From contig NIVC01001515.1 of NCBI GenBank assembly GCA_002269645.1, positions 62,001 to 126,000 of the forward strand: a DNA stretch of 64,000 bases, written 5' to 3'. Source of the stretch: Macrostomum lignano. Its lineage: Eukaryota. The position numbers and the translations under genes are program-made. Shown here piece after piece: positions 1,324-64,000 of the stretch. The notes under the pieces are model-generated. The model was given only the letters and a program-made list of their open reading frames with translations, searched no databases and was not told the DNA's origin. Positions within the stretch are counted from its first letter, which is position 1, and the number at the start of each line of letters is the position of its first letter.

Positions 1324-2110
<787 letters not shown>

Positions 2111-17039: not shown

Positions 17040-18140
<1,101 letters not shown>

Positions 18141-19071
18141 CAAGAGGATCGCCGCTAGCAAGTGCTGAACACGTCAAAATAAAAAGACGGAGACAGAGAG
18201 CCAAAAAGAAGCAGACAATGAAGCACAGAGCTTGGGAAAGCAACAACAGCAGCAGCGAAAGAAACAGAACTCCACTGATGCAATTTGCTTTGATTCATAC
18301 GAAAGCAGCGTTGTCACGCAAAACGAAAACAGAAGATAAAAAGCAAAATCGCAGCCCTCTCAAGCAATAGATAGAAGGCATTATTCTCTACTTCCTTCTG
18401 TCGGGGGAGGTCCGGTACGCAGGTAAAACAGCCTAACAGTAGAACTACCCATGGTGAGGAAAGGAGACAGATCCAACAGACCATAGATATCAACAAGATT
18501 TGCCCCGCTTGATCAGTGCACAGGCAATACGCTTGTAAACTACTTTTCATTCAGTAGCTTATGCGCATATTGCAGGAGGTAAATATTCAGAGCATGCCTA
18601 CCCGTACAGAAACACTGCAATGCAGACACTCACAATCTTGTAGAAATCTATAAACTTTGAATACATTTGAAAAAGAAACATTTTCTTTACACGTTGATAT
18701 ATGTAAATCACCACAAGTTGAACAGTGAAACGTAGTTGTGAAATGTGTGGAGAGCTGCTCCAGCACAGGCGCAACAAGATTATACAACAAAAAAATGAAT
18801 GAGATGATAGAGTCTGATGCAATTCAAAGTGATAGACAGACACTTTAAACACTGAATGTTGTCAGCATAGCCAGTATGGTATGTGCATTTGCTACTGAGA
18901 AGATTTATTGCGAAGACAAACGATTTTAAATTATTGATAATTATTATATATAGAGAACTACAGCACAATGCCAGACACCGCCAGTCAGGAGAGATAGCAG
19001 CTTATAAAATGACATATTAATTCATACTACTAAGGCAAGTGCCCAGCACTATAATGCATGCATTCTGCAGC

Positions 19072-22000: not shown

Positions 22001-25000
22001 GGGGTATCCGAGCGATTCTTGGTGGGGTATCCGAGTGATTCTTGGCGGCGCATCGGAGCGATTCATAGTGGGCCATCGGGGCGATTTTTGGTAAGGTATC
22101 GGGGCGATTCTCGGTGGGGTATAGGGGCGATTCTTGGTAAGGTATCGGGGCAATTCTCGGTGGGGTATCCGAGCGATTCTTGGTGGGGTATCCGAGTGAT
22201 TCTTGGCGGCGCATCGGAGCGATTCATAGTGGGCCATCGGGGCGATTTTTGGTAAGGTATCGGGGCGATTCTCGGTGGGGTATAGGGGCGATTCTCGGTG
22301 GGGTATAGGGGCGATTCTTGGTAAGGTATCGGGGCAATTCTCGGTGGGGTATCCGAGCGATTCTTGGTGGGGTATCCGAGTGATTCTTGGCGGCGCATCG
22401 GAGCGATTCATAGTGGGCCATCGGGGCGATTTTTGGTAAGGTATTGGGGCGATTCTCGGTGGGGTATAGGGGCGATTCTTGGTAAGGTATCGGGGCGATT
22501 CTTCGTGGGGTATAGGGGCGATTCTAGGTGAGGTATCGGGGTGATTTTTGGTAAAGTATCGGAGCGATTCTTGGTGGGGTATAGGGGCGATTCTTGGTGA
22601 GGTATCGGGGTGATTTTTGGTAAAGTATCGGAGCGATTCTTGGTGGGGTATAGGGGCGATTCTAGGTGAGGTATCGGGGTGATTTTTGGTAAAGTATCGG
22701 AGCGATTCTTGGTGGGGTATCCGAGTGATTCTTGGCGGCGCATCGGAGCGATTCTTGGCGGCGCATCGGAGCGATTCATAGTGAGCCATCGGGGTGATTT
22801 TTGGTAAAGTATCGGGGCGATTCTCGGTGGGGTATAGGGGCGATTTTTAGTGAGGTATCTGGGCGATTTTTGGTAAGGTATCGGGGCGATTCTCGGAAGG
22901 GTATAGGGGTGATTCTTGGTAAGGTATCGGGGCGATTCTTCGTGAGGTATAGGGGCGATTCTCGGTGGGGTATAGGGGCGATTCTCGGTGGGGTATAGGG
23001 GCGATTCTCGGTGGGGTATCGGGGCGATTCTTGGCGAGGAGAGTCTGTATTGGTGCAATATTTAGGCAGGACGACCGAGTTGCCGAGGGCAATTAAAGGC
23101 CAGCCAGAAGATAATTAGGATGGATAAACGTATTTTTCTCAAACAGCAGGGCTAGGACAACAATTAAAGGCAATTAAAGACGCAGACGCACCTGTGACAG
23201 TGAGCCGGCTATCAACAACATTATCAGGCAGGCCGCCAACCAGACAGGAAGCGGCCGGTGCGATCTGCTGAGAGCCGCCAAGCGTGCCAGTGCCGCCGCT
23301 GCCGCTGTCCGGGTCCTGTCGCATAGCGTTGGTGTGCAGCACCCAGGCGCGCGGGTCGATAGGCCTGACCGGCTCCTCGCGCGGCATTGTGCGCAACTGA
23401 TAATCGCGCGAGTCCCAGCACTTGGCCACTACTAGACGAATTTTGCCCGGCTTCTGCACCTGATCGCGTAATATTCGAACGGCTTCGTCGTTTTCAAGAT
23501 TTTCAAAAGCGATATTGTTAACCTCGAGCAGCATGTCGCCCGGCTGGATGCTGCCTTCGCGTTCCACGGCGCCGCCGCGCATGATTGAACCGACGTAGAT
23601 GCCGCCGGAGCCGCCGTTGGCTGCCGGATGGCCTACTATGCTGATGCCGAGGAACTGCACCGCGTCCATGTCCAGCTCCACGGTGCGCACGTCCAGGGAC
23701 ACCGCCGACTCAGTCACGCTGCTGAACGAGGACGTCTGGGGATGTTGGGTTTGAGGGTGCCGGTTCTGAGGTATGTTTGGGGGTGTTGGGTTTGAGGGTG
23801 CCGGTTCTGAGGTATGTTTGGGGGTGTTGGGTTTGAGGGTGCCGGTTCTGAGGTATGTTTGGGGGTGTTGGGTTTGAGGGTGCCGGTTCTGAGGTATGTT
23901 TGGGGTGTTGGGTTTGAGGGTGCCGGTTCTGAGGTATGTTTGGGGGTCTCGGTTTGAGATGTCGGTTTGGGGTGTCGGTTTAGGGGTGTCAGTTTGAGAT
24001 GTCGGTTTGGCGATGTTGTTTTAGGACAGCGGCCGCTGATTTTACCGTGAAGAGTTAAGAGATGTCTGACGGATGACATGCGAAGTACATGTATTAATGG
24101 ATTATGAATATCGATGAGCGCGTACGGTAGCAGGGACGTCGACAGACAGACAGAAAGACAGACACTGAGACAGACAGACAGACAGAGACGGACAAGAAAA
24201 CACTACAATATGGATGCTTTGGATGGATGGATAGTACTAATAAGCTAACTAATAGTAGTATAAATGCAGATTGTCACCAGCCAATAAACATAAGACAAGG
24301 TCAGCCCTCGTTATCTAGCTACTCACTCTGCTAATATGCGGTGCCCGTTTTTTGTGCCGATGATGCCGTTTCTGCAGATTTTTCCTGGCAGCGGCGGCGG
24401 AGTAGGTAGTGTTGGTGGCGCTGCTGAACCGGCTGCTCTCGATGTCATCTTCGCTGTCAAGAAATGAGGTCGAGTCCAGATCGCTTGACATCATGCTGCC
24501 AGCCGACTCGTAAGTTGGCTGCTGCTGCTTGCTGTGGTGATGCGGGCGACCCGGCCCACCAAGGCGGAGGCCTGCAGTGCGGATGGCGCATACAGATGGT
24601 GCAGGTCCCACAGTACACTCTGTACTAGCTAATAGGCACAGCTCATACAGATGGTGCAGGTCCCACAGTACACTCTGTACTAGCTTACGAGGCACATCAT
24701 CGTATAGGCACAGCTTATACAATTAAGGTGACAATCTTAGAAATCATACATCATGGCTAGACATAGTGTAACTTCACTGGCTTTTAACTGCCTGTCTGAT
24801 CGAAAAGTGCATATTATTATTTACGGTTTGTCATGACTTGAAGATGGAAACAGTCATAGTTGAACTTGTAAACACCCATTCCAACTAAGTTTAATATGAC
24901 AGGAAACGATTATCCAAACGTGCAAATTAAGCTATTCTACATAAAAGCAATAAGTAATTGATAATCTAAAACTGAAATGACGTACCGCGATGCCGATTGT

Positions 25001-28000
25001 TGAAACTGGGTAGCGGGGCCACTCGATCTGCAAAAATTTCACGAGACACATTAGTAAGACAGACAGAAGTTGCAGAAGTCTGCACACTCCATGTTTACTG
25101 ACTACTTAAATTTATCAATAAATAGAATTCCTGTATTCTAGAATTCCAATAATGAATTGAAATATGAAACAAGGTGGCCAATTTAGCATCCGGGGTCCAA
25201 ATTAAGGACACACGCAACGAAAAGCCTGCGCTGGTGCCTTTTCTGCAACGTGAAATTTCTAGCTAGAGACCATAGGCCAGCCAACTTACCAGCCTGTTGC
25301 TGGGCACTGTACTCGCTCTCAGAGCCGGTGCCGGATGCTCCGCTGCCGCCAGCTGGCAGAGCGGCTGCCCCGCCGCTGCCAAGCTTGCTGCCGGAATTGA
25401 CGCTGCCCTCCGCGTCCGCTGTGACCAGCTGGGTGGTGTGCGGCCATGCAGTGGCAATTACTTCAAATAGTGTACTTTTAACTATTAACTGCTCCAAAAG
25501 AGACTAGTCTGTCCAGAGTTCGCCTGGGAACTATTGAACTGGCCTGTAGAATACTGTGAACTGCTGTACATACTGAACAAAAAGGAGCTGTTTCTGCTTT
25601 TAACTCGAAGGGATTGCTGAGATGCCAAGGCTCAGAGGGGGGAGTTGCTGAGATGCCAGGGCTCAGAGGGGGGAGTTGCTGAGATGCCAAGGCTCACAGG
25701 GGGGAGTTTCTGAGATGCCAAGGCTCAGAGGGGAGTTTCTGAAATGCCAGGGCTCAGAGGGGGGAGTTGCTGAGATGCCAGGGCTCAGAGGGGGAGTTGC
25801 TGAGAAGCCATGGCTCAGAGGGGGAGTTGCTGAGATGCCAGGGCTCAGAGGGGGAGTTGCTGAGATGCCATGGCTCAGAGGGGGGAGTTGCTGAGATGCC
25901 AGGGCTCAGAGGGGGAGTTGCTGAGAAGCCATGGCTCAGAGGGGGAGTTGCTGAGAAGCCATGGCTCAGAGGGGGGGTTGCTGAGATGCCAAGGCTCAAA
26001 GGGGGAGTTACTGAGATGCCATGGCTCAATGGGGAGTTACTGAGATGCCAGGGCTCAGAGGGGGAGTTGCTGAGATGCCATGGCTCAAGGGGGGGGTTAC
26101 TGAGATGCCAAGGCTCAGAGGGGGAGTTGCTGAGATGCCATGGCTCAATGGGGAGTTGCAGAGATGCCATGGCTCAATGGGGAGTTGCTGAGATGCAAGG
26201 CTCAGGGGGGAATTCTGAACAACCATGGCTCAAATGGAGATGCTAGCTTAATACAAGTGCTAATGCTTTTCTGCTGCAAACATGTTAATTTCTAAGAAAC
26301 TAAGAATTGGGCTTTTGTAGTTTTTTTTGAAAAAAATTATTTCTATGTTGCCTCCTTACTGAGGGACTCGGCTTTCTAGCCAGTTTAGACTAGTTTTTTA
26401 AGAAAGTTTATCTAAATGACAGTTTAGGAACTTAAAAACGATTTATTAAGAATGATAAACAACAATAACACGCATCATGCAAAAACATACCCATGATTCG
26501 ACTTTGCCTTTTGAGAATGGTAGGTGGGCATTGTCATCTGCAATCTCTTCTTTAACAACTCTAAAATAAAATAAAATTACAAATTTAAAACAGCTTTCTG
26601 TTTAAAAATCTAGGCTAAAACTAAAAGTATATTAACATATAAAAACCTTTAACACATTGGTTTATGACTACTTTATTAATTAATAATCTGACTATTTAAT
26701 TCATTAAAACATTTTTAAATAAAGATAAACTAATAATGTTTTAGTACATACATGCCCAACCTCAAAATTTCACCTGTCCAGTGCAACTTAGTTTTGTCCA
26801 GATTTGCTACTTAGTTCCTGCTGATTATGATTTAGTTCCCCTGGTTGTAACCTAATTTTCACTTTGTATATGACTTTTCTTGCCTTTTCTCTTATCTTCT
26901 CTCTCTCTCTCTCTCTCTCTCCTCATTCCTCTTTCTCTCTCTCTTCTCCCTCCTTTCTTTTCCTTTTCTCTTCCTCTCTTTCTTCCCCCAAATTTTCATT
27001 TTTTGCATTTTTGATTTTGCAACTTACCTTGGCTGGTGGCCATTTCACCTATCTGGTTCAGATGGGTATGACAGGTGTTGGGCATGTATGTTTTTTAATA
27101 ACTTTTCTAAAATAAATATTTAATTCAAAATTGTGCCAAATGGACTTAAATAAAAAATTAGTAAGCATTTATTGTCCCTATTATATATTATTTTAAGGCA
27201 TCATTAAATATCTTAAATATAATATAAAAGAGCAATTTAATATTTTTCAGCTCTAAAACTAATATTCAATATTATTTACTATTTTAAATTATAAGTCTAT
27301 AGTTGGTAAAAAATATTGTAGATTATACATGTAAATAAGACAATGGCAATTAATCTTATTATATAATATATCTTTAAATTGAATTGCTTTTCTTTTTGTA
27401 ATTAAAAAAAGTTATTATGAGTGAAATATAAAGAATTTGAAACATACAAAATACTTTGAGACAAATAACATATTAACATATTCAAACAATATGATATTTA
27501 TGAACAGCCTATCCTTATATTAGCCATGTAAGTTACCAAAAAACAACATTAATTTTTTAAATTTTTTACTTTTATATTTATTACAACAGAAAATAATTGT
27601 AAATAAAGAAAGCATCTAGGCTAGCTTATATTTCAACAAATCAATGATAATATAATTGTTATAAATATAAAAAGACCAATATTATTCATTCAAAAAAGAC
27701 AATGCCATCAATTTAGACATTGGGAATTTATTTATTATATAATTATATTTATCAAAAATATATAGGCTATGACTCATATGGAAAAAGATAATTATTTATG
27801 ATTTATATAAAATAAAATTTCTTAGTTAACTAGCCTATCAATGTTGCTAACAAGGTTGCCATAATGACTTGATACTAAAATGGCTATCAATATTAATAAG
27901 ATTTTTAGTTGCCAAAATAGATTAGGGCCTAGGCTGATAGGCCCTTATTATAATTGTAGAATAAGCCTATACAATATCAATGCTATTAATCATAAGCTAG

Positions 28001-33807: not shown

Positions 33808-36800
33808 TTAAAGTTCGTCGCGAACTCCCGGGCCGGTCCAATCGCAGCGGCAGTCGCTGTCACTGGGCTGTTTAATATGCTCGTAGCTCTGCGACACGGC
33901 AACCGGACTGCGCAACAATTGGCCGTAACGTTCCAGCACCTGGCCCAGGTAGCACAGCACCTGTTCGGGCATCAGCCGGTTGAGCACGAATTGGCGGCCA
34001 GACTCGCCGATTTTCTCCGCCTGCGAGTCGTGCGCCCGCAGCCAGGCCAGCCGCTCTTCCAAGTCGCCGAGGTCCTCGCGAAGGGGCACGTAGTGCTTCA
34101 TGGGCTCCAGGTCCCGGTAAAAGTGCTCATAATAGTCTGAGTCCTGCTTCAGCACCGGACTGCCGCCGGCTAACAGGAAGGGCAAACGGTAGGCGGCCAC
34201 CGTGCCGTCTATGCTCACCTATGAAGATGAATTGAGTAATGTAGAGAGAAATATTACTTAATAGAAAATGCTAATACTGGGTAGCAGCTTTTTCAACACT
34301 ATATACACATTTTTTGTTGCAGACTCTGCTGCAGAATGAGTCATTGCCGCGATAGAGGGAATGGGTCATTGATTATAGGGAATGGGTCACTGATTATAGG
34401 GAATGGGTCATTGATTTTAGGGAATGGGTCACTGATTATAGGGAATGGGTCATTGATTATAGGGAATGGGTCACTGATTATAGGGAATGGGTCACTGATT
34501 ATAGGGAATGGGTCATTGATTATAGGGAATGGGTCACTGATTATAGGGAATGGGTCATTGATTATAGGGAATGGGTCATTGATTCTAGGGAATGGGTCAT
34601 TGATTCGATGAAATGGGTCATTGATTCTATGAAATGGGTCATTGATTCTATGAAATGGGTCATTGATTCTATGAAATGGGTCATTGATTCTAGGAAACGG
34701 GTCATCATTGATAGAAAATCGGTCACTGATTCTATGGAAAGGGTCATTGCTTAGATGTATAGGGAATGGGTCGTAATTGGGTCGTTACTGTTGCTACGTA
34801 ATGGGTCAATGTTGCTACGTAATGGGTCAATGTTGCTAGATAATGGGACATTGGATTCTAGATAATGAGTCACATTGTTGCTAGAAAATTGGTCATTGAA
34901 TTTAAGAAACGGGTCATTAGGTTTGAGAGAATGGGCCATTGATCCTATGGAATAGGTCATTGATTTTAGGGAATGAGTCACTGTTAAAGATAATGGGTCA
35001 TTTTCTCTAGAGAATGAGTCATCGCATGGTTGTACCTGATACTTGTACTTGAAGAAATCGCCGAGCGGCACGTGTTTCACAATATCGCCCAAAGATTTCT
35101 CGTGCTGAAAGAAGAACATATTAGTCAGTCGAGCGTCCACCAGGTCAGGCTTGGCCATAGACAGTTGGACCAGCTCCAGCCGGCGTTTATTAGAATCCCT
35201 GCCTCTAAAGAACGCCCTGGACAGGCGGTTGGGCCACCTGTAGCGCATGGAATCGTGGGCTGTTCGCATCAAATCATTATAGATTCGATCCATCATGCTC
35301 ACTGTGGCTTCGGTCAGCTCGTAGGTTGGCAGCACAATGTCCGAGGTGTGACGTGAGCCGCACCAGCTTAGAATAGGCAGGTGTGGCAGCCGGTCCAGTC
35401 GGCTGAGCGGCCAGTCGCCCAAGTTCAAAATGAAGTCCAGATCAGGGGCGCGGAATTTCCGCAGCAGGCTCAAAAGCAGAGGGTCGCTCATGAATGTGAA
35501 ACCTGGTGAATTTAATGGGGGTCGACTCTTGATCAAGTTAACGCTTCGGTTTTATTGAAGCTCAGGTCAGACAGGGGCATAACTTTTAGCCAGGAATTCT
35601 GGGGGCGGGGGGCGCTTCTATGGGGCGCCATTTCATTTCAGTGAAGGACACAGTAGTATAGCCCAAAGCTGCTGTCAAGGGGGCGCCCAAGCTGCTGTCA
35701 AGGGGCGTCAAAGCTTCTGTCAAGGGGCGCTAAAGCTGCTGTCAAGGGGCGCTAAAGCTGCTGTCAAGGGGCGCTAAAGCTGCTGTCAAGGGGCGCCAAA
35801 GCTGCTGTCAAGGGGCGCCAAAGCTTCTGTCAAGGGGCGCTAAAGCTGCTGTCAAGGGGCGCCAAAGCTGCTGTCAAGGGGCGCTAAAGCTGCTGTCAAG
35901 GGGGCGCCAAAGCTGCTGTCAAGGGGGCGCCAAAGCTGCTGTCAAGGGGGCGCCAAAGCTGCTGTCAAGGGGCGCCAAAGCTGCTGTCAAGGGGCGCCAA
36001 AGCTGCTGTCAAGGGGCGCTAAAGCTGCTGTCAAGGGGGCACCAAAGCTGCTGTCAAGGGGCGCTAAAGCTGCTGTCAAGGGGGCTCCCAAGCTGCTGTC
36101 AAGGGGCGCCAAAGCTGCTGTCAAGGGGCGCCAAAGCTGCTGTCAAGGGGCGCTAAAGCTGCTGTCAAGGGGGCGCCAAAGCTGCTGTCAAGGGGCGCTA
36201 AAGCTGCTGTCAAAGGGCGCTAAAGCTGCTGTCAAGGGGCGCCAAAGCTGCTGTCAAGGGGCGCCAAAGCTTCTGTCAAGGGGCGCTAAAGCTGCTGTCA
36301 AGGGGGCACCAAAGCTGCTGTCAAGGGGCGCCAAAGCTGCTGTCAAGGGGCGCTAAAGCTGCTGTCAAGGGGCACCAAAGCTGCTGTCAAGGGGGCGCCA
36401 AAGCTGCTGTCAAGGGGCGCTAAAGCTGCTGTCAAGGGGCGCCAAAGCTGCTGTCAAGGGGCGCCAAAGCTTCTGTCAAGGGGCGCTAAAGCTGCTGTCA
36501 AGGGGGCACCAAAGCTGATGTCAAGGGGCGCCAAAGCTGCGGTCAAGGGGCGCTAAAGCTGCTGTCAAGGGGCGCCAAAGCTGCTGTCAAGGGGCGCCAA
36601 AGCTGCTGTCAAGGGGGCGCCAAAGCTGCTGTCAAGGGGGCGCCAAAGCTGCTGTCAAGGGGCGCGAAAGCAGCTGTCAAGGGGGCGCCCAAGCTGCTGT
36701 CAAGGGGCGCTAAAGCTGCTGTCAAGGGGGCACCAAAGCTGCTGTCAAAGGGCGCCAAAGCTGCTGTCAAGGGGCGCAAAAGCAGCTGTCAAGGGGGCGC

Positions 36801-37908
36801 CCAAGCTGCTGTCAAGGGGCGCTAAAGCTGTCAAGGGGCGCCAAAGCTGCTGTCAAGGGGCGCTAAAGCTGCTGTCAAGGGAGCGCCAAAGCTGCTGTCA
36901 AGGGGCGCAAAAGCAGCTGTCAAGGGGGCGCCCAAGCTGCTGTCAAGGGGGTGCCAAAGCTGCTGTCAAGGGAGCGCTAAAGTCAATTTTTTATCAGGGG
37001 CGCCATATCCTTTTATTTGTCAATAAGAGTGAAAAACACGGCCCCTTGCCCTTTTGAGGTCAAATAAGATAGTTGAAATGGTCAAAAAGACCTCATGAAT
37101 TATGTGTTTTCTCTAAGCGAAAACAATATTAAGGTATATTCTGCAGCATAGAGTCTTCCACTCTAGTAGCAATTGACCGCAAAAAGTGTAGCACAGCTGA
37201 CTGGGGGTTATCTACATTAACTGCTATTCTTAGCCAACAGTACTAACCAGTATGCTTGCCAAAGCAGCTTCTGTACAACTCGTTGTCCTTAATAACGTAT
37301 CGACAATAGGCGTAAGCCCCGTCATTATCAAACCGCTTGGCAGCCTCGGCGGCCACTATAGGCATCTGGATGCCGGCTGGGCCGGAGAATCGGGCAAAGT
37401 CGGCCTCCAATTGGCTGTAATTGAACGACCTGCAGCCGTGATAATCTAGCCAGCCGGACAAGTCCATCTGCGGACAATTGCACTGCTCATCCCTGAGCGG
37501 GCCAGACAGGCGGTAAGGCGACTGGGCTACCGGCATGCCAAAGTAGAACACAGACAAGCTGGCATCGCTGTGCACCGTCTCATGCAGGCGGTAGCGCAGG
37601 ACGTACAGGCCGCCGCCAAGTCGGAGCGCCTCGCTGGTGTAGCGAAGTCGGCGATCTTCCGAGCCTGCGGCGCTCAGCTCCAGCCGGAGGGCGTCGCTGT
37701 CCACCTCAGGCAGGCTGGCATCGTCCAGCTGACGGCCGGCAGTGTCGCGCATCTGCACGAACAGGTAGCGAACTGGCAGAGTCCGGCGGCCGTCGAGGCC
37801 GGGCCCGAACACCAGAAAGTTGGCCGGGTCGGGCAGCGGCCCGGAGGCGGCAACTGCAAAACTGAGCAGGCAAAATGCCGGCAGCAACAGCAAGGCTGAC
37901 AGTCCCAT
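33808..37908 (-). CDS. KDELC1: KDELC/POGLUT2-3-like protein O-glucosyltransferase (filamin-like Ig domain + GT90/CAP10); 3 exons 37908-37248, 35502-35036, 34218-33808; ~512 aa
   Basis: Signal peptide; VFGPGL..LPVRYLFVQ filamin-type repeat; CNCP; [68 protein letters not shown]; C-terminal ER-retention signal RDEL. Intron phases match. Confidence 0.93.
34355..34990. repeat. 21-bp minisatellite (gggaatgggtcattgattata) filling KDELC intron 2
   Basis: Perfect copies grade into degenerate copies. Confidence 0.93.
35665..36980. repeat. 21/22-bp minisatellite (ggggcgccaaagctgctgtcaa) in KDELC intron 1
   Basis: About 60 copies. Confidence 0.98.
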
Positions 37909-38661
37909 TGCAATAGGAAAACGACAGGGAGATCGCAAAGCCAGGGCAGCAAGTGGATCGGATAGATTTAAGCCTTAAGAATGGCTGCAACACGCTATAG
38001 AGCACCGCCAGCTGTCGCTTCCAAGCCAGCCCCAAAAATTTCCTTCTCTGCCGCCTTCGGTACTCAGTGGATTAATTTAATCACCGCACAGAGTAGTGAA
38101 TGAAGGAAGAGATTTAGGGGCAGCCGGCGCCCTCGCAGCTCCCGTTGCTGCTGGCTGTGCGAAGCAGAATGTCTGTAATTAATTCAGAATTTGCATCGAA
38201 GTCAATTAGTTTCTTTCTGCTATTATTTCTGAGAGCAGGATTTGTCGCACATGTGGCCTAGGTCATGCGTAGAATGGCTTGGAACTAAGGATGGCCTTGT
38301 CACTAGCTACTTATTAAAGTAGAAATCTTGCCCCCACACATTGAATGCAAATAGGTACGACAACATACGTTATTCAAAGGAAATAGTTGCAAATTAAGGT
38401 ACTCGTCGTGTTATACAGTGTAATCTTTTAAGATAGATTAAGATTCTACTTAAAAAAGTCATAGAGGTATGTGTAAGAGTAAAAATTCTGGTTCGTAAGT
38501 AGTTTCTGTTGGATAGCGATCGCAAACTTTTCCTGTATTAATCAATAGACTAATTTTCAAACCACTGATACATTGGTGATAGTTTGATAAACTGAACGAA
38601 GTCTGACAGTAATCAAAGGGTAAAACTGAATTGATAAAATTTCTCTATAAATTATGATTAA

Positions 38662-45200: not shown

Positions 45201-45639
45201 GTATTTTTTCCTAACAGTAGAAATTAATAATGCTATAAACTGTATTTCTTAACTATATTGATAGACAAATATTTCATCTAGTATATTAGTTATTAGAATA
45301 CTTTTTTTATTTTTTAAAACAAATTGTCTAGATAATAGATTAATTATTAGTTTATAATTAACTAATATATATAAATAAAACTGAATTAGCACAATAACAC
45401 TACAATAGCTCATCTGTGACTATAAGACCTAGGACAAATATTTGATTCTAAAGCAAAAGCTTAGACCACTACCCCAACCAAAGAAAAATCTTGTCCATGC
45501 CACTGGCTACTAGCAACAAACCTAATCATTCAACTATCTTTCCCTTGTTAGTTGCATTCCCTAGCTACTTCTCTACTTTCCCTACCTAACCTACCCTAGC
45601 TTGCCCTTCTTATTCCCTTGCTGTCTATCTAATCCACTG

Positions 45640-47820
45640 CTCCCTCTAGCTAATCCCAGCTCTACCTAGCTATACAATGCTCGCCCTAGCTACCCCTTGC
45701 TCTCCCTAGCTATACCCTGCTCTCCCTAGCAACCCCTGCTCTCCTTAGCTACACCCTGCTCTCCCTAGCAACCCCCTGCTCTCCTTAGCTACACCCTGCT
45801 CTCCCTAGCAACCCCCTGCTCTCCTTAGCTACACCTAGCTCTCCTTAGCTACACCCTGCTCTCCCTAGCAACCCCCTGCTCTCCTTAGCTACACCCTGCT
45901 CTCCTTAGCTACACCCTGCTCTCCTTAGCAACCCCCTGCTCTCCTTAGCTACACCTTACTCTCCTTAGCTACACCCTGCTCTCCTTAGCAACCCCCTGCT
46001 CTCCTTAGCTACACCCTGCTCTCCCTAGCTACACCCTGCTCTCCTAGCAACCCCTGCTCTCCTTAGCTACACCCTGCTCTCCTTAGCTACACCCTGCTCT
46101 CCTTAGCTACACCCTGCTCTCCTTAGCTACACCCTGCTCTCCCTAGCAAACCCCTGCTCTCCTTAGCTACACCCTGCTCTCCCTAGCAACCCCCTGCTCT
46201 CCTTAGCTACACCTAGCTCTCCTTAGCTACACCCTGCTCTCCCTAGCAACCCCCTGCTCTCCTTAGCTACACCTAGCTCTCCTTAGCTACACCCTGCTCT
46301 CCCTAGCAACCCCCTGCTCTCCTTAGCTACACCTTGCTCTCCTTAGCTACACCCTGCTCTCCCTAGCAACCCCCTGCTCTCCTTAGCTACACCCTGCTCT
46401 CCTTAGCTACACCTGCTCTCCCTAGCAACCCCCTGCTCTCCTTAGCTACACCCTGCTCTCCCTAGCAACCCCCTGCTCTCCTTAGCTACACCTAGCTCTC
46501 CTTAGCTACACCCTGCTCTCCCTAGCAACCCCCTGCTCTCCTTAGCTACACCCTGCTCTCCCTAGCAACCCCCTGCTCTCCTTAGCTACACCTTACTCTC
46601 CTTAGCTACACCCTGCTCTCCTTAGCAACCCCCTGCTCTCCTTAGCTACACCCTGCTCTCCTTAGCAACCCCCTGCTCTCCTTAGCTACACCCTGCTCTC
46701 CTTAGCTACACCCTGCTCTCCTTAGCAACCCCCTGCTCTCCTTAGCTACACCTTACTCTCCTTAGCTACACCCTGCTCTCCTTAGCAACCCCCTGCTCTC
46801 CTTAGCTACACCCTGCTCTCCCTAGCTACACCCTGCTCTCCCTAGCAACCCCCTGCTCTCCTTAGCTACACCCTGCTCTCCTTAGCTACACCCTGCTCTC
46901 CTTAGCTACACCCTGCTCTCCTTAGCTACACCCTGCTCTCCCTAGCAAACCCCTGCTCTCCTTAGCTACACCCTGCTCTCCCTAGCAACCCCCTGCTCTC
47001 CTTAGCTACACCTTACTCTCCTTAGCTACACCCTGCTCTCCTTAGCAACCCCCTGCTCTCCTTAGCTACACCCTGCTCTCCTTAGCAACCCCCTGCTCTC
47101 CTTAGCTACACCCTGCTCTCCTTAGCTACACCCTGCTCTCCTTAGCAACCCCCTGCTCTCCTTAGCTACACCTTACTCTCCTTAGCTACACCCTGCTCTC
47201 CTTAGCAACCCCTGCTCTCCTTAGCTACACCCTGCTCTCCCTAGCTACACCCTGCTCTCCCTAGCAACCCCCTGCTCTCCTTAGCTACACCCTGCTCTCC
47301 TTAGCTACACCCTGCTCTCCTTAGCTACACCCTGCTCTCCCTAGCAAACCCCTGCTCTCCTTAGCTACACCCTGCTCTCCCTAGCAACCCCCTGCTCTCC
47401 TTAGCTACACCTAGCTCTCCTTAGCTACACCCTGCTCTCCCTAGCAACCCCCTGCTCTCCTTAGCTACACCTTGCTCTCCTTAGCTACACCCTGCTCTCC
47501 CTAGCAACCCCCTGCTCTCCTTAGCTACACCCTGCTCTCCTTAGCTACACCTGCTCTCCCTAGCAACCCCCTGCTCTCCTTAGCTACACCCTGCTCTCCC
47601 TAGCAACCCCCTGCTCTCCTTAGCTACACCTAGCTCTCCTTAGCTACACCCTGCTCTCCCTAGCAACCCCCTGCTCTCCTTAGCTACACCCTGCTCTCCC
47701 TAGCAACCCCCTGCTCTCCTTAGCTACACCTTACTCTCCTTAGCTACACCCTGCTCTCCCTAGCAACCCCCTGCTTTCTCTAGCTATACCCTGCTCTTCC
47801 TAGCAACCCCCTGCTCTCCC
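45640..47820. repeat. 20/21-bp dimeric minisatellite (ctctccttagctacaccctg / ctctccctagcaaccccctg), ~2.2 kb
   Basis: About 105 copies of two alternating unit types. Confidence 0.98.
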
Positions 47821-50427: not shown

Positions 50428-50752
50428 TAATAATTGATAATAATTAATACTTCATTACACCCGTCCTAATTTGGCCAGATGTGCAGCCGACAGCACAGCC
50501 GCAGCTATTGCGCGGTGCATCTCAAGATTGCATACAGCTGTTCAGTCCATGGCCCTAGCTAACTGGCCCTCGCCAGACCCACCCTCAATTACCCCAGCTA
50601 ATGCTGGCACCCATTTTAACAGCTGCGTGAACTGAAGCAATGCAGAGTTTAGTGTCTTGCTGAAGGACACAAATTGTACCAGAGTGGAGTCGGGAATCGA
50701 ACCCCCGACTTTCAAGTCTTGAGTCCGACTCTAACCACTGGGCTGCAACCCC
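50428..50752 (-). mobile_element. tRNA-derived SINE (family 2) with a CORE/MIR-like central domain
   Basis: A-box GCAGCCCAGTGG, B-box GGTTCGATTCC, then GTGTCCTTCAGCAAGACACTAAACTC..GCTTCAGTTCACGCAGCTGTTAAAATGGG. A second copy lies at 59601-59910. Confidence 0.8.
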
Positions 50753-53926: not shown

Positions 53927-54818
53927 CAGTGAGCAAAACTGCCAGGAGTGCAGAATCGGCGCCAGAGATGTACTTTGTGCATTCTAGGTTCGCCAAGCGG
54001 CTCGGGTGATGAATCATGCGGTCTCGATCTGATGTTCGAGTTAGCCTATCAGCGCTATAGGAGAGGCTAGTTGGCGCGTTGAAGGCCAAAAGTGCATATC
54101 TTCGTATTTAGCAATGTACACGTACTACACGTAGCTACCCCGTAGACTCGCCACAACAAGAATCCCCTGCTGAAGTCCCCTACTGTACCTGCATGGCCAA
54201 TGCGATCAAGTCCCAGCAGTGTCCCTTATCATCGGCTATGACTTCGAGATTGACAGCAACTCACTGCACGTTGCTTAAGCAGCGAACATTAGAACCCCAG
54301 AAGGTGCAGGCCGTCACATGTCTGGTACATGTAATACTCTAGCCGATGCTAATGCAATGCGGATCTAATCCGCAGACTAAGCTAACCCGCTGCCACCAGC
54401 CCGTGCGTCCTGGCTCAACAAACCGGGACTTTCGAAATCGGGCTTCCGACTAGAGGGGGCTTTGCACGTACCTGCCAACTAGTGTCTTTTTGCTGTCAAT
54501 CTCGAAGTCATAGCCGATGATAAGGGACACTGCTGGGACTTGATCGCATTGGCCATGCAGGTACAGAGGGGACTTGTGAAGGGGATTCTTGCAGTGGCGA
54601 GACTATGGGGTAGCTACATGTACTGTTACATTGCTAAATACGAAGATATGTACTTTTGGCCTTCAAGGCGCCAACTAGCATCTCATAGCGCTGATAGGCT
54701 AACTCGAACATCAGATCGAGACCGCATGATTCATCACCCGAGCCGCTTGGCGAATCTAAGAGTGCACAGAGTACATCTCTGGCGCCGACTCTGCACTACT
54801 GGCAATTCAGTCTGACTG
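53927..54818. mobile_element. Foldback element: ~330-bp inverted arms (53927-54259 / 54490-54818) around a ~230-bp spacer
   Basis: The arms are reverse complements, with long perfect stretches such as gcatggccaatgcgatcaagtcccagcagtgtcccttatcatcggctatgacttcgagattgacagcaa. Confidence 0.9.
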
Positions 54819-55144
54819 CTGTTGTCTGTTGATGTTGTCGGCATGATTTAATTGGTTTGATTCAGATTTCATGTGATAATTGAATGAATTTGCAACACGT
54901 AATGATGAATAGTCTAATTTTTTAATACGATCAACCATATACATGTAGGCATGATAGAGACCCCAAGATACTTTAATTTCCAGTCATAGGATTTCAGAAG
55001 TCATAGGATTTCAGAGCCACAAAATTAAACGAAAAGTGTCGCAATATGTCGGACTAGGTACCCTTAAAATTTGTCTACTTGGCTTTAAAAAATCTCGAGT
55101 CAATGCGTGCAAGATCCAACGGCACTGACTAGCCTATTTCAGTA

Positions 55145-57073
55145 AGGGGATGTCAACTTAAGCACCAGAATGGAGCCCGAAGTTTAGCTCCAGACCAAAC
55201 CGACTGGAATCGATAACTTGTCGACCCAGACGACTAGAATCGCCGAGACGTCCCATCCGGGTCCCTTCCTTGGGATACCAGGGGATAAAGGGGATAAAAT
55301 GGGGATCTCATGTCAACTTAAGGCTCTAGAATGGAGCCCAAAACAAGGCTCTCGACCAAACCGACTGGAATCAGCAGATTAGACATTGTTATCGAGAACT
55401 CAATGGCAAAGTACAACCGGGCACATCCAGGTTTTGAATCATTGAAACAGCTGCCACCGTCATGGACAGGGCTATCGTTGTTCGAATTCGGTTAGAATTT
55501 CATGCGCCGAGTGTTCTTGTCCAACGAACTGGACGAAATTGAGCAGCTGCAATTCAACTGTGATCTGACGCGTGCTAACTCCTCTGCTAACACAAGGGCA
55601 TTGATTTCCGTCAATCCGCTGGTCCAAGGGCATGGAGATCCAAAAAGCTGGGGGTTCCCCCGAATTCACACAGAGAATTTGACAGAGGTTTCGGTGGGTT
55701 CGTATCAACTAAATCAAGCCGATGATTACATTCAAAACATTCGTGTCAAAAAGGTTCTCGGTAGCTATACGAAGGTGACTCCTGAAGAGACTTTCAGTCG
55801 CTCACATCCGAACATCTGAGCCACCTGAAGTGTTGGAAGTTTCGGCAAGAGTCGTCCTAGTCAGAAAACTGGAGCAACCTATTCGGTCGGTGGCATCCGT
55901 CTTGGATTTTTCTAGCTGTCGTTTTCTCGCGCCATGATTCGAAATCCTACCGCGTGATTCTTAGAGTGTGTGACAGCAGCGGACAATCGCTTTGGTTTTA
56001 GAGATCCAGGATTGCAACTTCTTCATGGCTACTATTCGTCTGCAAAAGCTGGAAATACGACTGCAGGCTGCGATTGTCATGTAATGGCAGTGCTCAAACT
56101 CCTGGGCTGCAACGCTTACCACCAAGATAGCTATCGAAGGTCTGGTGCTAGCCTTTGCTTTGTTGATTCCGCTCTTCCACGCAGGCTTGTTGGCAGACTT
56201 TATACCAGAGAAAATGCTTTACCACAGCAGCGAAGGCCTACTGAGCAACAGTCTAGCAGACAGCATAAGGAGTTACAGTCAGCCAGCAGCAGCTCACGAT
56301 CCAAGCCTCAGCCTTCAAGACTCTTTGGTCTTCAAAACCATGGTCAGCAGTGCTATACGCAATTGTTGTTGCACAACTGTTTCACTGCATCAGCAGCGAA
56401 GTCCAACTCCTTCAGCCGGTCAGAGGTAGAGCAGTGAACACCGCAATGACCAACCTGATGACATCTATGGCGACTGGACCAGCAAGCGTAGATCAACTTG
56501 TCAAAGCTATCCGAAGCCGATATCCGCAGCAGTTGTCGCCAAGACAGCAACACTGCATGAACGAGGTGCTACAGTGCATTCTGTCAGAGTTGCAGCTGCA
56601 GCGTCATTGCCTAAGCGAATTTATACTAACCGTACGTGCGGTAGTTGCCTGATTAGCACGGAGGAGCTGCTCATAGGAGTTCTGGATAATTGTATCCTCA
56701 GAATCTCCTTGCAGGAGTTTTCAACCGCACTGTTAACTCTAGACTGTCTCTACGCTGCTTTTACGTCACCAAAGCACGTCCCATGCACCAACACCAACTA
56801 TGCAGCTGATAGTGCGCTGGAAGCTCAAGTCTCTAACGGCAGAGTGACTCTGATGCAGAGTGTCCGGAGCTGAACTTCGGGCTCCATTCTAGAGCCTTAA
56901 GTTGACATGAGATCCCCATTTTATCCCCTTTATCCCCTGGGACCCCAAGGAAGAGACCCGGATGGGACGTCTCGGCGATTCTAGTCGTCTGGGCCGACAA
57001 GTTATCGATTGCAGTCGGTTTGGTCGGGAGCTGAACTTCGGGCTCCATTCTGGTGCTTAAGTTGACATCCCCT
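55145..57073 (+). mobile_element. 1.93-kb TIR DNA transposon (195-bp TIRs, TA duplication) carrying decayed PIF/Harbinger-ISL2EU-like transposase C-terminal sequence and a USP peptidase fragment
   Basis: 55145-55339 is the near-exact reverse complement of 56879-57073, and TA flanks both ends. Internal motifs: FPRIHTENLTEVSVGSYQLNQADDYI, FSRHDSKSYRV, GYYSSAKAGNTTAGCDCHVMAVL (SWIM-like), GLQNHGQQCY, QQHCMNEVLQCIL, TCGSC..EE, DCLYAAFTSP. Confidence 0.85.
56320..56870 (+). pseudogene. Frameshifted, C-terminally truncated ubiquitin-specific protease (peptidase C19) domain inside the TIR element
   Basis: Cys box GLxNxGxxCY, a QQD-box-like motif, fingers CxxC (TCGSC) and an L.DCL..FT.PE-like motif occur in the correct order over three frames. 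The His box is absent. Confidence 0.65.
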
Positions 57074-57076
57074 TAG

Positions 57077-57511
57077 GACATGAGCAATAAAAGTTGGCTC
57101 CATCTCGGGGCAAACATTTCTGACAATGGCAAATCGATGGAGCATCTCTTGAGCATTCCAACGACAACGAATAACGTCGAAGAAGACCAACCAGAAGGCT
57201 ATAAAAGTTCATCTAAATGTCTTGACCCCTGTATAGGCAAGGCAGATCCATGTAAGGAGATTCGGACGCAGTACTCTAACGGCTGCCAGCTGGCCTCAGA
57301 TGGACTAACATCTACGGGACATATGGCATATGACACGAAATTGTATCTGCTTTCTAGGTGGCGTATGATCGATTTTGGGACCCCCCTTTGTTCCGATAGA
57401 TCTGACGAAATTCAAGACCCTGTACTTTATTATAACGGTAGAAGCCATCGCCTTCGAAATCTGGGCTCTACTAGCCAGTCTAAGAAAGTGCAACAACACT
57501 TTGAATATTGA
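57077..57511 (+). CDS. Probable terminal exon of an unidentified gene, interrupted at its splice acceptor by the TIR element
   Basis: Stop-free 144-codon frame of non-repetitive sequence (KCLDPCIG..CKEIR..CQLASDGL..YLLSRWRMIDFGTPLC). The empty site rebuilds tttCAG-TAG|GAC ATG in frame. Confidence 0.4.
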   Translation, partial: DMSNKSWLHLGANISDNGKSMEHLLSIPTTTNNVEEDQPEGYKSSSKCLDPCIGKADPCKEIRTQYSNGCQLASDGLTSTGHMAYDTKLYLLSRWRMIDFGTPLCSDRSDEIQDPVLYYNGRSHRLRNLGSTSQSKKVQQHFEY

Positions 57512-59600: not shown

Positions 59601-59910
59601 GGGGTTGTAGCCTAGTGCTTAGAGCATCGAACTCACGACTTAAGGTCGGGGGTTCGATTCCCGACTACACTGGTAGAATTTGTGTCCTCAAGCAAGATAA
59701 TAAACTCTGCGTTGCTTCAGTTCACCCAGCTGTCAAAATGGGAACCAGCAGCTGGGGTAATTGAGGGTGTGTGTGGCGTCCCCCCAGTCAATGGACTGAA
59801 CAGCTGTACGCAGCCTTCAGATGCGCTGCGCAATAGCTGCGGCTGTGCTGTCGGTTGCACATCTGGCCCAATCCGGCCAGGTGTAATCAATTACTAAATT
59901 ATTAATTATA
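59601..59910 (+). mobile_element. tRNA-derived CORE-like SINE (family 2), second copy
   Basis: GGGGTTGTAGCCTAGTGC A-box, GGTTCGATTCC B-box, CORE-like block and AT-rich tail. Collinear with 50428-50752. Confidence 0.8.
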
Positions 59911-60307: not shown

Positions 60308-63300
60308 TCAATCACTTTCTGAGCCTTCTTCGTCTTCTAGGTCTCCTAGGCTCGACGACGTTGAAGACTGATCTTCCCTTGCCAGGTCGATATATTCATC
60401 AAACGTATTGGGAGCGTGAAGGGTGCGCTGTACAGTCTCCACCTTGCGAAGAAGCTCTATGAACATCATTCTGAACTGAGCATCGAGGCCTTGAGCATCA
60501 CGAAACTGTGACTCCGCTTGAATCAGGCGGTGTTGCAAATCGTGTACCTCTTGGCGTAGCATGACGCCTTCCTCCTTGAGGCGGTCAGAACGACTGCTGG
60601 CATCGATGATGCGTTTGCGCAACAAGCAATCTAGTCCGCTCTGGCTCTGACCACAAGAAATGAAGACTTCGCCTTCAGGATCTAAGAAGTCTTTCATCGG
60701 TGCCCGCTGTGTAGGTGGAAGACTGCCAATAGATCTTCGAATCTTAATTCTCAGCTTCTCTAGGCGACGAACTATCAGCTGGCAGTCTCGTTGGCCATAG
60801 GCAGTACGCATTTTGCGAAGTAAAAACTGAGATTCGGTCGCGTAGGATCGCAGGCGCTCTAGAGCAGAAGCAGGCCTATTAGAAGCCAGGCGATCTTCCG
60901 ATAAAAATTGCTTGCCCAGTTCAATCAGAACGGCAACGTCGGATGCTGCAATGAAAATATAAGAAATAAAATAATGGGCTCTGCATATTTCTCTAGCAGC
61001 GTGAGCAGCACACGACAATGAAATGAGAATTTTGTATTAGCAGCAGACGAATAGACAAGAAAATTACACATGTTCGAATCTGCAAAAACTAAAAAACAGA
61101 GCGAGGTACCAAAGAAAAAACTTTACAGTCTCACCTTGTGGCACGGAAACTAACAGCTCCTTTAATTCTGTGCTTAGTGCGTCGGAATGCTTCTTGTGCA
61201 GGCGGAGCCGACAATTTAGCCAGTCTGCTACAGGAAGAAATAAAAAAGTATGACCGCTGTAACTACGTGAAACAAAATGCTACTACTTGAAACTTGAATG
61301 CTTTGTTTTAGTTGCATTGTTGATTTCTGGCTAATATTTAAACTTTGAAGCTCTAGTCCCAATCGACACTAGAAAATTTTTTATCCCCAAAATTGGACTT
61401 TGGTTCTTAGTCACTGAAGTACTGCGACTTTATATATTGATGAGAAAAGGTGTTTAACAATACCTGTATTTAGAAGCTGTGTCGCATTTAGATGCCTGAT
61501 AACATAGGCCAAAAAGAAAGTACGCCGGTCCAAGCGCATCTCTTTCAATTGTGGGCCATATGGTCGAAGCAAGGCGTTAATGCGCTCGCAGTGTTCGCCG
61601 TCGGTCAGACCGCAGCCTTCGACAACTCGAACAGAGTGACGCAGCTGGAAAGGTTCAGGAACAAAGATAACTTGGTTCAGACAATACTTTTGCTCGTGCG
61701 AGAGCCCACTGAATTCTCTGCAAACAACTGCTCGAGATAGTGCATGTATATACAGGAATCTGAAATACTTAAGAAAAGAGCATTCATTTTATACATGAGG
61801 TCACAGAAAGCACTGTCGATTGGAAGTTTTTTTATGAATGATCACAAAAACAAACGGGCTAAAATTCTAGCTTACGTAGCATATAATGAATAAATAGGCC
61901 TAATTAAAATTCTAACCTGACACTTTGTCTGATGACCGTAAGCGTGAAAGGCGTTCACTGCAGGCGTAATTCTTTCCGTCGATGTTGAGTCTTCCGCGAT
62001 GGCCTGCAATCGGCTCCCGATTTTGCAAGCAACATCATATATAAAAATAAGATTCCGTGCTGCTGGCTGGTTGCGTAGATAATACTTTAGGCAATATTCA
62101 GCATAGGCGAGACGCTCGCCATTTGACCGAATATCAGCACAAGCACCAATAAAATTGTGACGGCAGCTGATAGCGAAGAAACCGTGGATATCGAGTCCAG
62201 CTCTGCCGCCACGTACCAAGTCACCAGCATGAAAATTAGAACAAGCATCGTTTGTCTGGTTACTGGAAGCATCTGTTGATCTATTTTCCGGTACATGGAC
62301 AAACGGAGCTGGCAAAACTCCGTTAGATGGTAGAACGTCCTGTTTATTGCCGGCAGAGCTCTTGCGCCGAAGACCAAAAATGCCGTCAGCTGCTAGAATA
62401 GTAGGACGCTCGGTGCACTCCTAAACAATTAGAACCGTGGCGATTTTTACGACTAATGCAGATACGTTGCATAATAACATTTTTGCTAATTCAACAAACA
62501 AATGCGGTCGCTTTTTAGGACATTTAAAAAATAAAGTGCCCCGAACTTTTCTCAATTCTGCCTGTACAACTATAAAAAACAAGAAAGTGTAAAATAATTA
62601 TTATACTTACACTGTTTGGACACAGCATGCAATTCGTCGGCCAAAAAGTGACATCCAGAATTAACTGACGGTAGCGCTGCATAGTGCCATGACGATAAAA
62701 GGATTGATAGAGGTTGTTAAAATTCTGAAAATAGCAACATGTGAGTCATTAAACAAGTATTTAACCTTTGTTGTGACAATTTTTTTATTCATTCTAAGCC
62801 TAACAAGGCTTCATTCGAAAGTTTCCTCTATTTACGTATTAAGGAAAAAGGAAAGTCATGGACAGTATGCTCAGCTTACGTACCGTTAGCTGGGCCCTTG
62901 AAAATGTCCCAGAGAGCAGAATCGTCCGGAGAGCTTTCCATAACGACAATGTCCCTTCGCACATTAGACTGTCGATAAGTTCAAGCAATCTAATGTCCAC
63001 GAAAGAGACAGGATCCTGTTTGCTGATTGGGAAGTAGCCCTGCTTCAGGAGACTATCCGTCGAGCAGTTCGCACAGAGGGCAAAGTCAGCAGAGATTTCT
63101 GCAAAAGTCGAAAAAGTGTAAAAACACATCTCATGCAGAAAGAATGCATATTAAAGTACACTATAGGTTGAGAAGAGTTATATTCTTTTATTTCACGTGT
63201 AATATTACGTAAAGAATCTGATTCTGAACATCACCGAAAAATTATAGCAACTCTTACCCCCATGCTCGTCAATAAGCGAAATGGCGAAAGTGTGCCCAGC

Positions 63301-63981
63301 TACAGTCGACTCTGAGCAACAAGTCATCTTGGGCCTCGTTGGAGCTGCTTCGGTTGAAAACAAATTGCCCTAAGAGTTGAAAGGTAAAGAATTTACATTA
63401 CTTTGTGAGGGCACCAAATTTTCATTAATTTGATGAGCTGGCCTTAATATTCAATTATGGGAATGTAAGATATAAAATTAGAGTACTTAAAAATTGTGAT
63501 ACAAAATATAAAAGGAGTAAATTACATTCCACTCCAGGAATCGATGCGGAAGGAATTGACCATGTGACAACTCTTTGCAATCCGAGCAAAATTGGACTCT
63601 GCAGTTGCAGCAAAAAAATGTGGCGAAGTTGCATCGGCATCTAATACACATGGACTGCAGAAAGAAATACTTGAAGTTCAACGAATATGTCACAGGATTC
63701 TCCGAGATGTCCCAGGGGATGGTCGACGCCACTGTTGACTCTAGATCTTCTGACGAGTGTACTTCTGACGATGATGATGGAAATATATAATCAGCACCTT
63801 CGCCACGAACACCACTACCACGATCGCCTCCTCCTCTGCCACGAGCACCTCTACAAGGAGCGCCACCGCCATGAGCACCTCCGCGAGAAGCGCCACCGCC
63901 ACGAGCACTGTAGCAAATATAATGGTGAGTGCCTTCACCTCGGACCCCTCTGACATAAAGTTTCACGGCGTGCCTCCTCAT
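60308..63981 (-). CDS. KDZ (Kyakuja-Dileera-Zisupton) transposase with CxC-type zinc domains; at least 8 exons: 63981(or further upstream)-63526, 63369-63258, 63098-62884, 62724-62611, 62420-61917, 61644-61464, 61227-61135, 60945-60308; ~770 aa
   Basis: CxxC..A.F.C.NC...FCSDC...H...PHR..EWNG; C.NC....LLKQGYFP; C.LCP; ADGIFGL (D); CSNFHA; D..G....CRH; GE...Y; YDVAC (D); FHAYGH..CQ; EGCGLTDGEHCER (E); R...EE...L..E. All seven introns are GT-AG and in phase, with no internal stop. Confidence 0.9.
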
Positions 63982-64000
63982 TTGAGACGATGCGCTCTGA

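Follow-up and report, generated by a model that had tools for sequence, protein, structure and literature searches.

Can a cut-and-paste transposase carry its own deubiquitinase? The question is raised by an element at positions 55145-57073 of a 64,000-nucleotide stretch of the Macrostomum lignano genome (assembly GCA_002269645.1, contig NIVC01001515.1, positions 62,001 to 126,000 of the forward strand), which as a whole we call the window. Between terminal inverted repeats flanked by TA, the remnant of a transposase is followed by the remnant of a ubiquitin-specific protease (USP, peptidase family C19). A preliminary description of this DNA had suggested that the autonomous parent of the element encodes a transposase fused to a deubiquitinase, and the domain order in four related contigs largely supports that suggestion. 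We consider it probable that the element belongs to a family of PHIS-type (PIF/Harbinger-ISL2EU) cut-and-paste transposons whose transposase has a C-terminal USP, and that the window copy is a dead relic of this family. The case is built on the inverted repeats and their TA flanks, an order of domains that recurs in three diverged lineages, the intact catalytic set in one relative, and the excess of synonymous change.

Coding remnants of the window copy

All of the coding remnants lie on the + strand. Transposase remnant A (SRLDIVIENSMAKYNRAHPGF ... FPRIHTENLTEVSVGSYQLNQADDYIQNIRVKKVLGSY) occupies 55373-55783 in the frame of 55145, with an in-frame stop at 55493-55495; its positions 55373-55768 align with residues 403-528 of the related protein P0013 at 51% identity (blastx, E=4e-38). 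Transposase remnant B (EGDS*RDFQ..CWKFRQE..WSNLFGRWHPSWIFLAVVFSRHDSKSYRVILRV) follows at 55768-55977 in the frame of 55144, with stops at 55783-55785 and 55858-55860, and is 63% identical to residues 48-116 of a second relative, P0012 (blastx, E=6e-28). Next come a conserved C-terminal Cys/His motif (DNRFGFRDPGLQLLHGYYSSAKAGNTTAGCDCHVMAVLKLLG, 55979-56134, frame of 55145), which matches residues 195-247 of P0015 (blastx), a low-complexity linker rich in Gln, Ser and Pro (56200-56317), and the USP remnant, spread over three frames at 56318-56870 and recognized both by the Pfam UCH profile and by blastx to P0016. The peptide motifs on which the fusion proposal had been based are all present: FPRIHTENLTEVSVGSYQLNQADDYI at 55655-55732, SRHDSKSYRV at 55927-55956 in a reading frame that differs from that of FPRIHTENLTEVSVGSYQLNQADDYI, GYYSSAKAG..AGCDCHV at 56027-56083, and the USP Cys box GLQNHGQQCY at 56327-56356, with its Cys codon at 56351-56353. 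One uninterrupted open reading frame (ORF) of 155 codons (55970-56437) does cover both the Cys/His motif and the Cys box, as had been proposed, and the linker lies within it.

The coding homology opens at 55373, directly after an inner copy of the repeat, which argues that the first ~400 codons, including the C2H2 finger, the helix-turn-helix (HTH) region and the DDE core, have been deleted; it stops at 56870, six bases short of the right repeat. Placed on a composite reference protein of ~976 residues (P0013, the tail of contig L001, and P0016), the window copy spans residues ~403 to 890. Its frame shifts ~4 times, near 55768-55783, 55960-55985, 56356-56371 and 56622-56640, and is broken by the three in-frame stops that begin at 55493, 55783 and 55858. 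With the 5' and 3' coding parts gone, the copy fits the earlier description of a deleted, frameshifted derivative. Judged from its sequence, the cut-and-paste DNA transposon inserted at TA in 55145-57073 is dead and non-autonomous; neither enzyme is predicted to be encodable, and movement would be possible solely through transposase from another copy. The copy is a relic without likely function.

The USP domain

In the stitched translation of the window copy, UCH (PF00443) is the only Pfam domain recognized. The USP piece aligns with profile positions 1-105 of 254 and scores E=5e-5 (23.4 bits), just under the cut-off of 23.9; with the Cys box of the relative L002 spliced in, the score is 24.4 bits. 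Together with its alignment to P0016, itself a UCH-domain protein, this score upholds the assignment of the segment to family C19. Its matches in the PDB are all USPs, at non-significant E-values. The preliminary description had overlooked that the homology runs past the Cys box, in two more frames, as far as 56870, and takes in the USP block QQHCMNEVLQCILSEL (56545-56592, + strand) and a zinc-ribbon CGSC (56637-56648, + strand). The remnant aligns with residues 104-193 and 197-276 of P0016 (blastx, E=2e-11) and represents the first two thirds of the domain; its end equals P0016 residue 276, and the remnant lacks the ~86 C-terminal residues that hold the His and Asp boxes. No introns interrupt the segment, while the host genes in the window are split.

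P0016 retains what the window copy has lost. It matches Pfam UCH with E=1.1e-14 (55.2 bits), USP2 and USP15 align with it over the Cys box and the His box (GGHYTA...WWLMDDSRV), and with the His box and Asp region GGHYTASVWHNGAWWLMDDSRV the catalytic Cys, His and Asp residues are all kept.

Relatives of the element

We searched 1.84 billion protein representatives exhaustively with HMMER, using the upstream 207 residues as the query. Only four proteins matched. P0012 and P0013 are near family members, and P0015, from contig L003, is a distant relative. The fourth, P0014, is a junk gene model in which a translated repeat, with 95% identity to that of the window element, joins the coding region at another deletion breakpoint, so the family has other deletion derivatives. 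P0016, encoded on contig L004, was retrieved separately, with a profile of the Cys/His and USP blocks.

The contigs behind these proteins give the domain order. L001 (3023 bp, from a metagenome) carries a terminal core, the 560-residue P0013 ORF, the Cys/His motif (..NYSSSKAGSRTAGCDCHVMAALLILG) and the linker, and then ends. L004, from the same metagenome, matches the 3' end of L001 at 89-95% identity apart from a 137-bp deletion; its single open frame extends from ILGHYSYEP, just past the Cys/His motif, and takes in the linker and a complete USP domain before reaching a stop. L002 (1344 bp) comes from a sequencing-run assembly, a different data set than that of L001, and has 68% DNA identity to the window; along it lie RYLVECSFAAIKQ.., FGFRDPGLQLLQGY (FGFRDPGLQLL), SSAKAGSRTAGCDCHVMAVLKLLG (SSAKAGSRTAGCDCHV), a linker rich in Gln and, last before the contig ends, VFGLRNRGLQCYANVVVQLFRC (VFGLRNRGLQCYANVVVQLF). 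The linkers of L001, L002 and L004 are similar in composition to that of the window copy and stand at the equivalent position.

The USP is thus found at the equivalent position in other members, L002 and the L001/L004 pair, and is, as far as these sequences tell, a property of a clade shared by at least three diverged lineages and not a one-off capture. Its Cys box, QQ box and zinc-ribbon CxxC are kept across lineages at only 25-49% protein identity. L003 ends 35 residues past the Cys/His motif, with no USP and with AT-rich non-coding DNA downstream, which argues that the USP was gained within the family.

Other searches added no members. A word-indexed protein search with the 425-residue stitched translation gave no match, the low-complexity linker having probably flooded the candidate list, and exact look-ups of three window ORFs found no contig encoding them. 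Scanning metagenomes with family peptides produced 157 pattern sites, none of them confirmed, in a collection that evidently does not hold L001; scanning with the shared terminal core produced eight loci, all chance matches without family coding sequence. A scan of viral contigs yielded no family match, NCBIfam had no match for P0013 or P0016, and Rfam had none in the window.

The motif that precedes the linker had been called SWIM-like, a label that does not hold: neither the window ORF nor P0015 matches Pfam SWIM (PF04434) at any E-value up to 10. The window copy, L001 and L002 read YSS[AS]KAG where the CxC pair of a SWIM motif would sit, and P0015 has Cx4C..Cx2H. As the CxC is missing in all three copies of the USP clade, its absence is a feature of the clade and not decay of the window copy. 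Four family members share the invariant positions N.FGF, K.G, AGCD.HV and LG, and a better name is conserved C-terminal Cys/His motif, N.FGF...K.G..AGCD.HV...LG.

Identity of the transposase

The N-terminal motifs of the window copy had been likened to the C-terminal part of Harbinger/ISL2EU-like transposases. The alignment with P0013 bears this out, together with sub-threshold matches of P0013 to HTH_Tnp_4 and DDE_Tnp_4. P0013 has a C2H2 finger at its N-terminus, followed by the HTH_Tnp_4 and DDE_Tnp_4 regions and a VECTFAAIK glutamate motif. The stitched transposase of L003 independently matches the same region of the DDE_Tnp_4 profile (E=0.0098), and the motifs GDHTY, FDRGY and VECTF are visible in the relatives.

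Several other superfamilies were considered and set aside. Tc1/mariner elements are similar in their TA and in long repeats with doubled units, but the transposase fits HTH_Tnp_4 and DDE_Tnp_4 and no Tc1 profile. A SWIM motif and long repeats are typical of MULE elements, but the 9-bp duplication they require is absent. Zisupton/KDZ elements are present nearby and are unrelated to the element with inverted repeats. A Helitron-like origin was rejected given the 198-nt inverted repeats and given relatives that encode a DDE-type transposase and show no match to Rep or helicase.

Ends of the element and target site

The preliminary description gave the inverted repeats as 195 bp long; the repeats are there, but we measured 198 nt without the TA. 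The left repeat, which begins AGGGGATGTCAACTTAAG, lies at 55145-55342 on the + strand and is 96% complementary to the right repeat at 56876-57073 on the - strand. In the alignment of the two arms there are 8 mismatches, and the outermost 42 nt are perfect. The arms being 4% diverged suggests, from sequence comparison, that the window copy is not very recent. The reported TA duplication is also present, at 55143-55144 and at 57074-57075 (strandless in both cases), so that with the TA included the arms are 55143-55342 and 56876-57075, 200 nt each and 96% complementary. A matching dinucleotide is expected by accident once in 16, and the TA/TA pair alone is weak evidence. In this single copy the ends could also be read as GGGG...CCCC termini with a 3-bp TAA/TTA duplication containing one mismatch.

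The 40-nt terminus occurs at two sites in the window, both of them ends of the element, with 0 expected by chance; blastn, tblastx and a search for the terminal core found no second copy of the element in the window. Each end contains a doubled unit. On the left, a terminal unit of ~63 nt at 55149-55211 has a direct inner copy 161 nt downstream, at 55310-55372 on the + strand (ATGTCAACTTAAG..AGAATGGAGCCC..GACCAAACCGACTGGAATC), detected among the direct-repeat families. The right end mirrors the left: its outer copy occupies 57007-57069, and its inner copy, which is partial, runs from 56862. These doubled units are putative paired binding sites for the transposase. The terminal core GGATGTCAACTTA recurs near the 5' end of L001, ~800 bp upstream of the transposase ATG, where the flank reads TTAA|AGAGG and the boundary is ambiguous; a second, inner copy of the terminal unit was looked for in L001 and none was seen.

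At its two ends the window element reads TAA (left) and TTA (right), which do not form a direct repeat. PIF/Harbinger elements have a 3-bp TWA duplication and a second ORF for a Myb/SANT protein; the window element does not show that duplication, and neither L001 nor the window element contains a Myb-like second ORF. Two hallmarks of ISL2EU were likewise not seen: P0013 has no Pfam match to a THAP domain, and no second ORF with a YqaJ exonuclease was seen in L001, a contig that is incomplete at its 3' end.

Evidence against the fusion and alternative readings

Several results weigh against a transposase-USP fusion of PHIS type. The match of P0013 residues 104-141 to HTH_Tnp_4 (E=2e-4, 21.3 bits) is below the Pfam cut-off of 27, and its match to DDE_Tnp_4 (E=0.011, 15.8 bits) is below the cut-off of 24.8. 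The family sequences total five, and none of them supplies the 3' terminus and repeat of a full-length element. A structure model of P0016 from the single sequence was unusable, with a mean predicted local distance difference test score (pLDDT) of 38.6. The remaining points concern selection on the USP and the continuity of the reading frame.

To gauge selection, we compared the window copy with L002. The ratio of non-synonymous to synonymous change (pN/pS) was 0.26 in the transposase part (p=4e-13), 0.31 in the Cys/His motif (p=6e-8) and 0.48 at the N-terminus of the USP (p=0.002), in a comparison where synonymous sites are saturated (pS 0.67 to 0.91). A codon-position test was highly significant for the transposase and the Cys/His motif; on the USP part it gave no significant excess (p=0.46). 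By these measures the USP has been under constraint, though its signal is weaker than that of the transposase. Part of the signal is diluted by neutral decay, both the window copy and L002 being dead.

A weaker signal is also what favors a passenger: the USP may have been captured once, at the base of the clade, and carried in the transposase frame ever since with no contribution to transposition. The full ranges of pN/pS (0.48 to 0.76 for the USP, 0.26 to 0.38 for the transposase) and the lack of a significant third-position excess in the USP differences speak for this, as does the distant relative L003, which manages without a USP; extra domains in Helitron-like elements are treated by the authors who described them as captured, their use unknown (PMC11417382). 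Against it stand the three boxes retained at such low protein identity, the complete set of Cys, His and Asp in P0016, and a pN/pS significantly below 1. We regard a mere passenger as unlikely.

The second difficulty is the frame. A single ORF running through the DDE core, the Cys/His motif and a complete USP was one of the things to look for in longer copies, and no copy is uninterrupted throughout: L001 is broken by a stop and a frameshift, L002 by two stops and a frameshift. In both copies the one frameshift is a +1 shift, and the two lie 3 nt apart (L001 ~2735-2745 and L002 ~760-770, corresponding to window ~56030-56040), between ..LLQGY and YSS.KAG, just before the Cys/His motif. Each puts a stop in the transposase frame, the sites reading GCA TAA C in L001 and TAC TGA C in L002. 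The window copy is continuous at this site but has a 2-nt gap ~60 nt upstream, which leaves the net frame relation the same. The proximity of the L001 and L002 shifts argues that the active element may not make a simple one-frame fusion. Shifts coinciding in this way have a chance of ~0.6%; they may mark a recoding site, stem from an assembly artefact or be accidental.

This pattern gives some footing to a family with two products, in which the transposase frame ends before YSS.KAG..AGCDCHV and the Cys/His-USP part is read in +1 by programmed frameshifting or another form of recoding. In its favor are the two single shifts, both with a stop in the transposase frame, and the net +1 between the same two parts in the window copy. 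The shift would, though, split a conserved domain that is continuous in both the window copy and P0015. The inserted bases of L001 and L002 differ in kind and in exact position, and the shift in the window copy is 60 nt away; L001 and L004 differ by 11 small gaps in 389 nt, which may reflect assembly error, and the pattern rests on two copies. Two separate products are rather improbable in our view, compared with a covalent fusion of transposase and USP.

A further alternative is that the related contigs are domesticated genes, host fusions of transposase and USP, and that the window element is an unrelated repeat holding a pseudogene fragment. Consistent with this, no complete relative with both repeats was recovered. 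The fragment in the window, however, sits exactly between the 198-nt inverted repeats with TA on either side, the terminal core precedes the ORF of L001, one sample yielded L001 and L004 as two distinct decayed copies, and P0014 is a second deletion derivative bounded by repeats; domestication is very unlikely. Least credible is that the window copy alone took up a host USP fragment in the manner of a Pack-type element, within a family that has no USP: the window does hold one copy, its USP truncated and borderline in Pfam, but L002 and L001/L004 have the USP after the Cys/His motif and linker at no more than 68% DNA identity to the window, they cannot descend from the window derivative because they hold DDE and His-box parts that it lacks, and the segment is intronless with non-synonymous change below synonymous.

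A model of the autonomous element

On the fusion reading, the autonomous form would be a protein of ~976 residues with the order C2H2 finger, HTH_Tnp_4-like region, DDE_Tnp_4-like region, Cys/His domain, linker and complete USP. The zinc finger and HTH at its N-terminus may bind the paired terminal units, and the DDE core would perform the cutting and pasting. The attached USP could deubiquitinate either the transposase that carries it or the chromatin or repair factors where transposition takes place, and its action would shield transposition from host control. We propose, tentatively, that active members make a transposase with its own working USP, possibly through +1 recoding at the site where a sense codon is followed by a stop, and that they need this USP for efficient transposition; we hold this to be possible, and short of an even chance. 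If true, it would be the first DDE cut-and-paste transposase with a built-in deubiquitinase.

Comparison with known systems

The PHIS superfamily comprises PIF/Harbinger, ISL2EU, Spy, Pangu and Nuwa (PMC4122938, PMC4482050). Our family resembles it, at Pfam scores under the cut-offs, in the HTH_Tnp_4-like region followed by a DDE_Tnp_4-like region in the relatives, with a ..VE..FAAIK.. glutamate motif. The TA flanks of the window element, read as a 2-bp duplication of a short AT-rich target, would also agree with ISL2EU, where the duplicated dinucleotide is typically AT (PMC4122938); this likeness is seen in a single copy without an empty site. Repeats beginning with AG or GG are reported for PHIS groups (PMC4122938, PMC4482050). 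The differences are several. ISL2EU transposases start with a THAP domain, and a second ORF encodes a YqaJ exonuclease (PMC4122938); our family begins with a C2H2 finger, and across 3 kb of a relative no second ORF, Myb-like or YqaJ, was seen. Its repeats are 198 nt long with doubled terminal units, compared with 11-61 bp in the newer PHIS groups, and its transposase has a long C-terminal extension ending in the USP. With only four relatives of the C-terminal region among the proteins searched, this extension is not a general PHIS feature.

The preliminary description knew of no fusion between a transposase and a USP. For DDE transposases we found no such report either, and surveys of PHIS elements mention no protease; for mobile elements more broadly the claim is too wide, as USP-type domains are known in Helitron-like elements. 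UCH (PF00443) is one of the domains that Helitron-like HLE2 elements stably include (PMC11417382), and OTU and VTD deubiquitinases have been described in Helitron-like elements as well (PMC9741609). HLE2/Helentron elements and our family have in common a deubiquitinase-type cysteine protease at a conserved position in the coding region, and the role proposed for the Helitron-like proteases is likewise to protect transposition proteins from ubiquitin-dependent control (PMC9741609, PMC11417382). Helitron-like elements, though, move by rolling circle with RepHel and have neither inverted repeats nor DDE, while our family is of the cut-and-paste type, with terminal inverted repeats and a DDE-type transposase.

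Compared with cellular USPs (USP2, USP15, USP12 and USP1), the family shares the Cys box GL.N.G..CY.N, the QQ..E.L box and the zinc-ribbon CxxC, and P0016 also shares the His box GGHYTA and W.MDDS.V. The family domain is minimal, ~270 residues, its identity to solved USPs is low (best E=5e-7), and unlike the cellular enzymes it is joined to a transposase in decayed multi-copy elements. Among cut-and-paste DNA transposons, MULE and CACTA elements bear a protease of the ubiquitin-like modifier system, Ulp1 (C48). That protease belongs to a different clan with a different, SUMO-type substrate, is found with other transposase superfamilies, and is usually a separate gene and not a C-terminal domain. 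Mobile elements with proteases of the ubiquitin system are therefore known; new here are the setting, a DDE transposase, and the lineage, which is very sparsely sampled. The finding would add this deep lineage to the PHIS superfamily. A deubiquitinase covalently attached to a classical DDE transposase would also give a simple two-domain protein for study, in which a catalytic-cysteine mutant could show directly whether ubiquitin removal aids the cut-and-paste reaction.

Surroundings of the element

A nearly perfect hairpin (foldback) of ~870 bp at 53937-54807, with nested inverted repeats that are 86-99% complementary, ends 335 bp upstream of the left repeat. Adjoining the right end, on the + strand at 57080-57511, is a 143-residue ORF in which a Cys-rich part (..CSDRSDE..) resembles an LDL-receptor class A repeat, with no Pfam match. 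Some 3 kb downstream lies a second, unrelated DNA transposon: the region 60308-64000 on the - strand contains a KDZ (Kyakuja-Dileera-Zisupton) transposase fragment (ORF 61872-62315, Pfam KDZ E=1.2e-21), and two further ORFs lie near it, one at 63487-63981 with a B-box-like zinc finger (E=7e-4) and one of 236 residues at 60308-61018 that has no match. Two ~270-nt copies in opposite orientation, at 50444-50712 and 59642-59897, are 86-93% complementary and contain the tRNA T-arm-like GGGTTCGATTCCCGAC; they are probably tRNA-derived short interspersed elements and bracket the element at a distance of 9 kb.

Farther upstream, a satellite that repeats every 20 bp, more than 100 times over, fills 45600-47700 and has a strongly C-rich strand (GC skew -0.6). 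Micro- and minisatellite arrays at 1158-3686, 17581-18246, 21402-23058 and 25754-26246 give rise to spurious repetitive ORFs, SIYL.. and ITICQ.. among them. Host genes are represented by split exons on the - strand at 8013-10249, 23139-23717 and 33808-37938, with matches to a rhodopsin-family receptor (7tm_1, E=3e-15), a Dishevelled-like PDZ domain (E=3e-16) and a GT90/CAP10 glycosyltransferase (E=8e-31). For the GT90 exon, whose nearest kin lie in distant animal phyla and mark the source organism as poorly sampled, the best matches (beetle, nematode and sea-cucumber proteins) reach only 44-66% identity.

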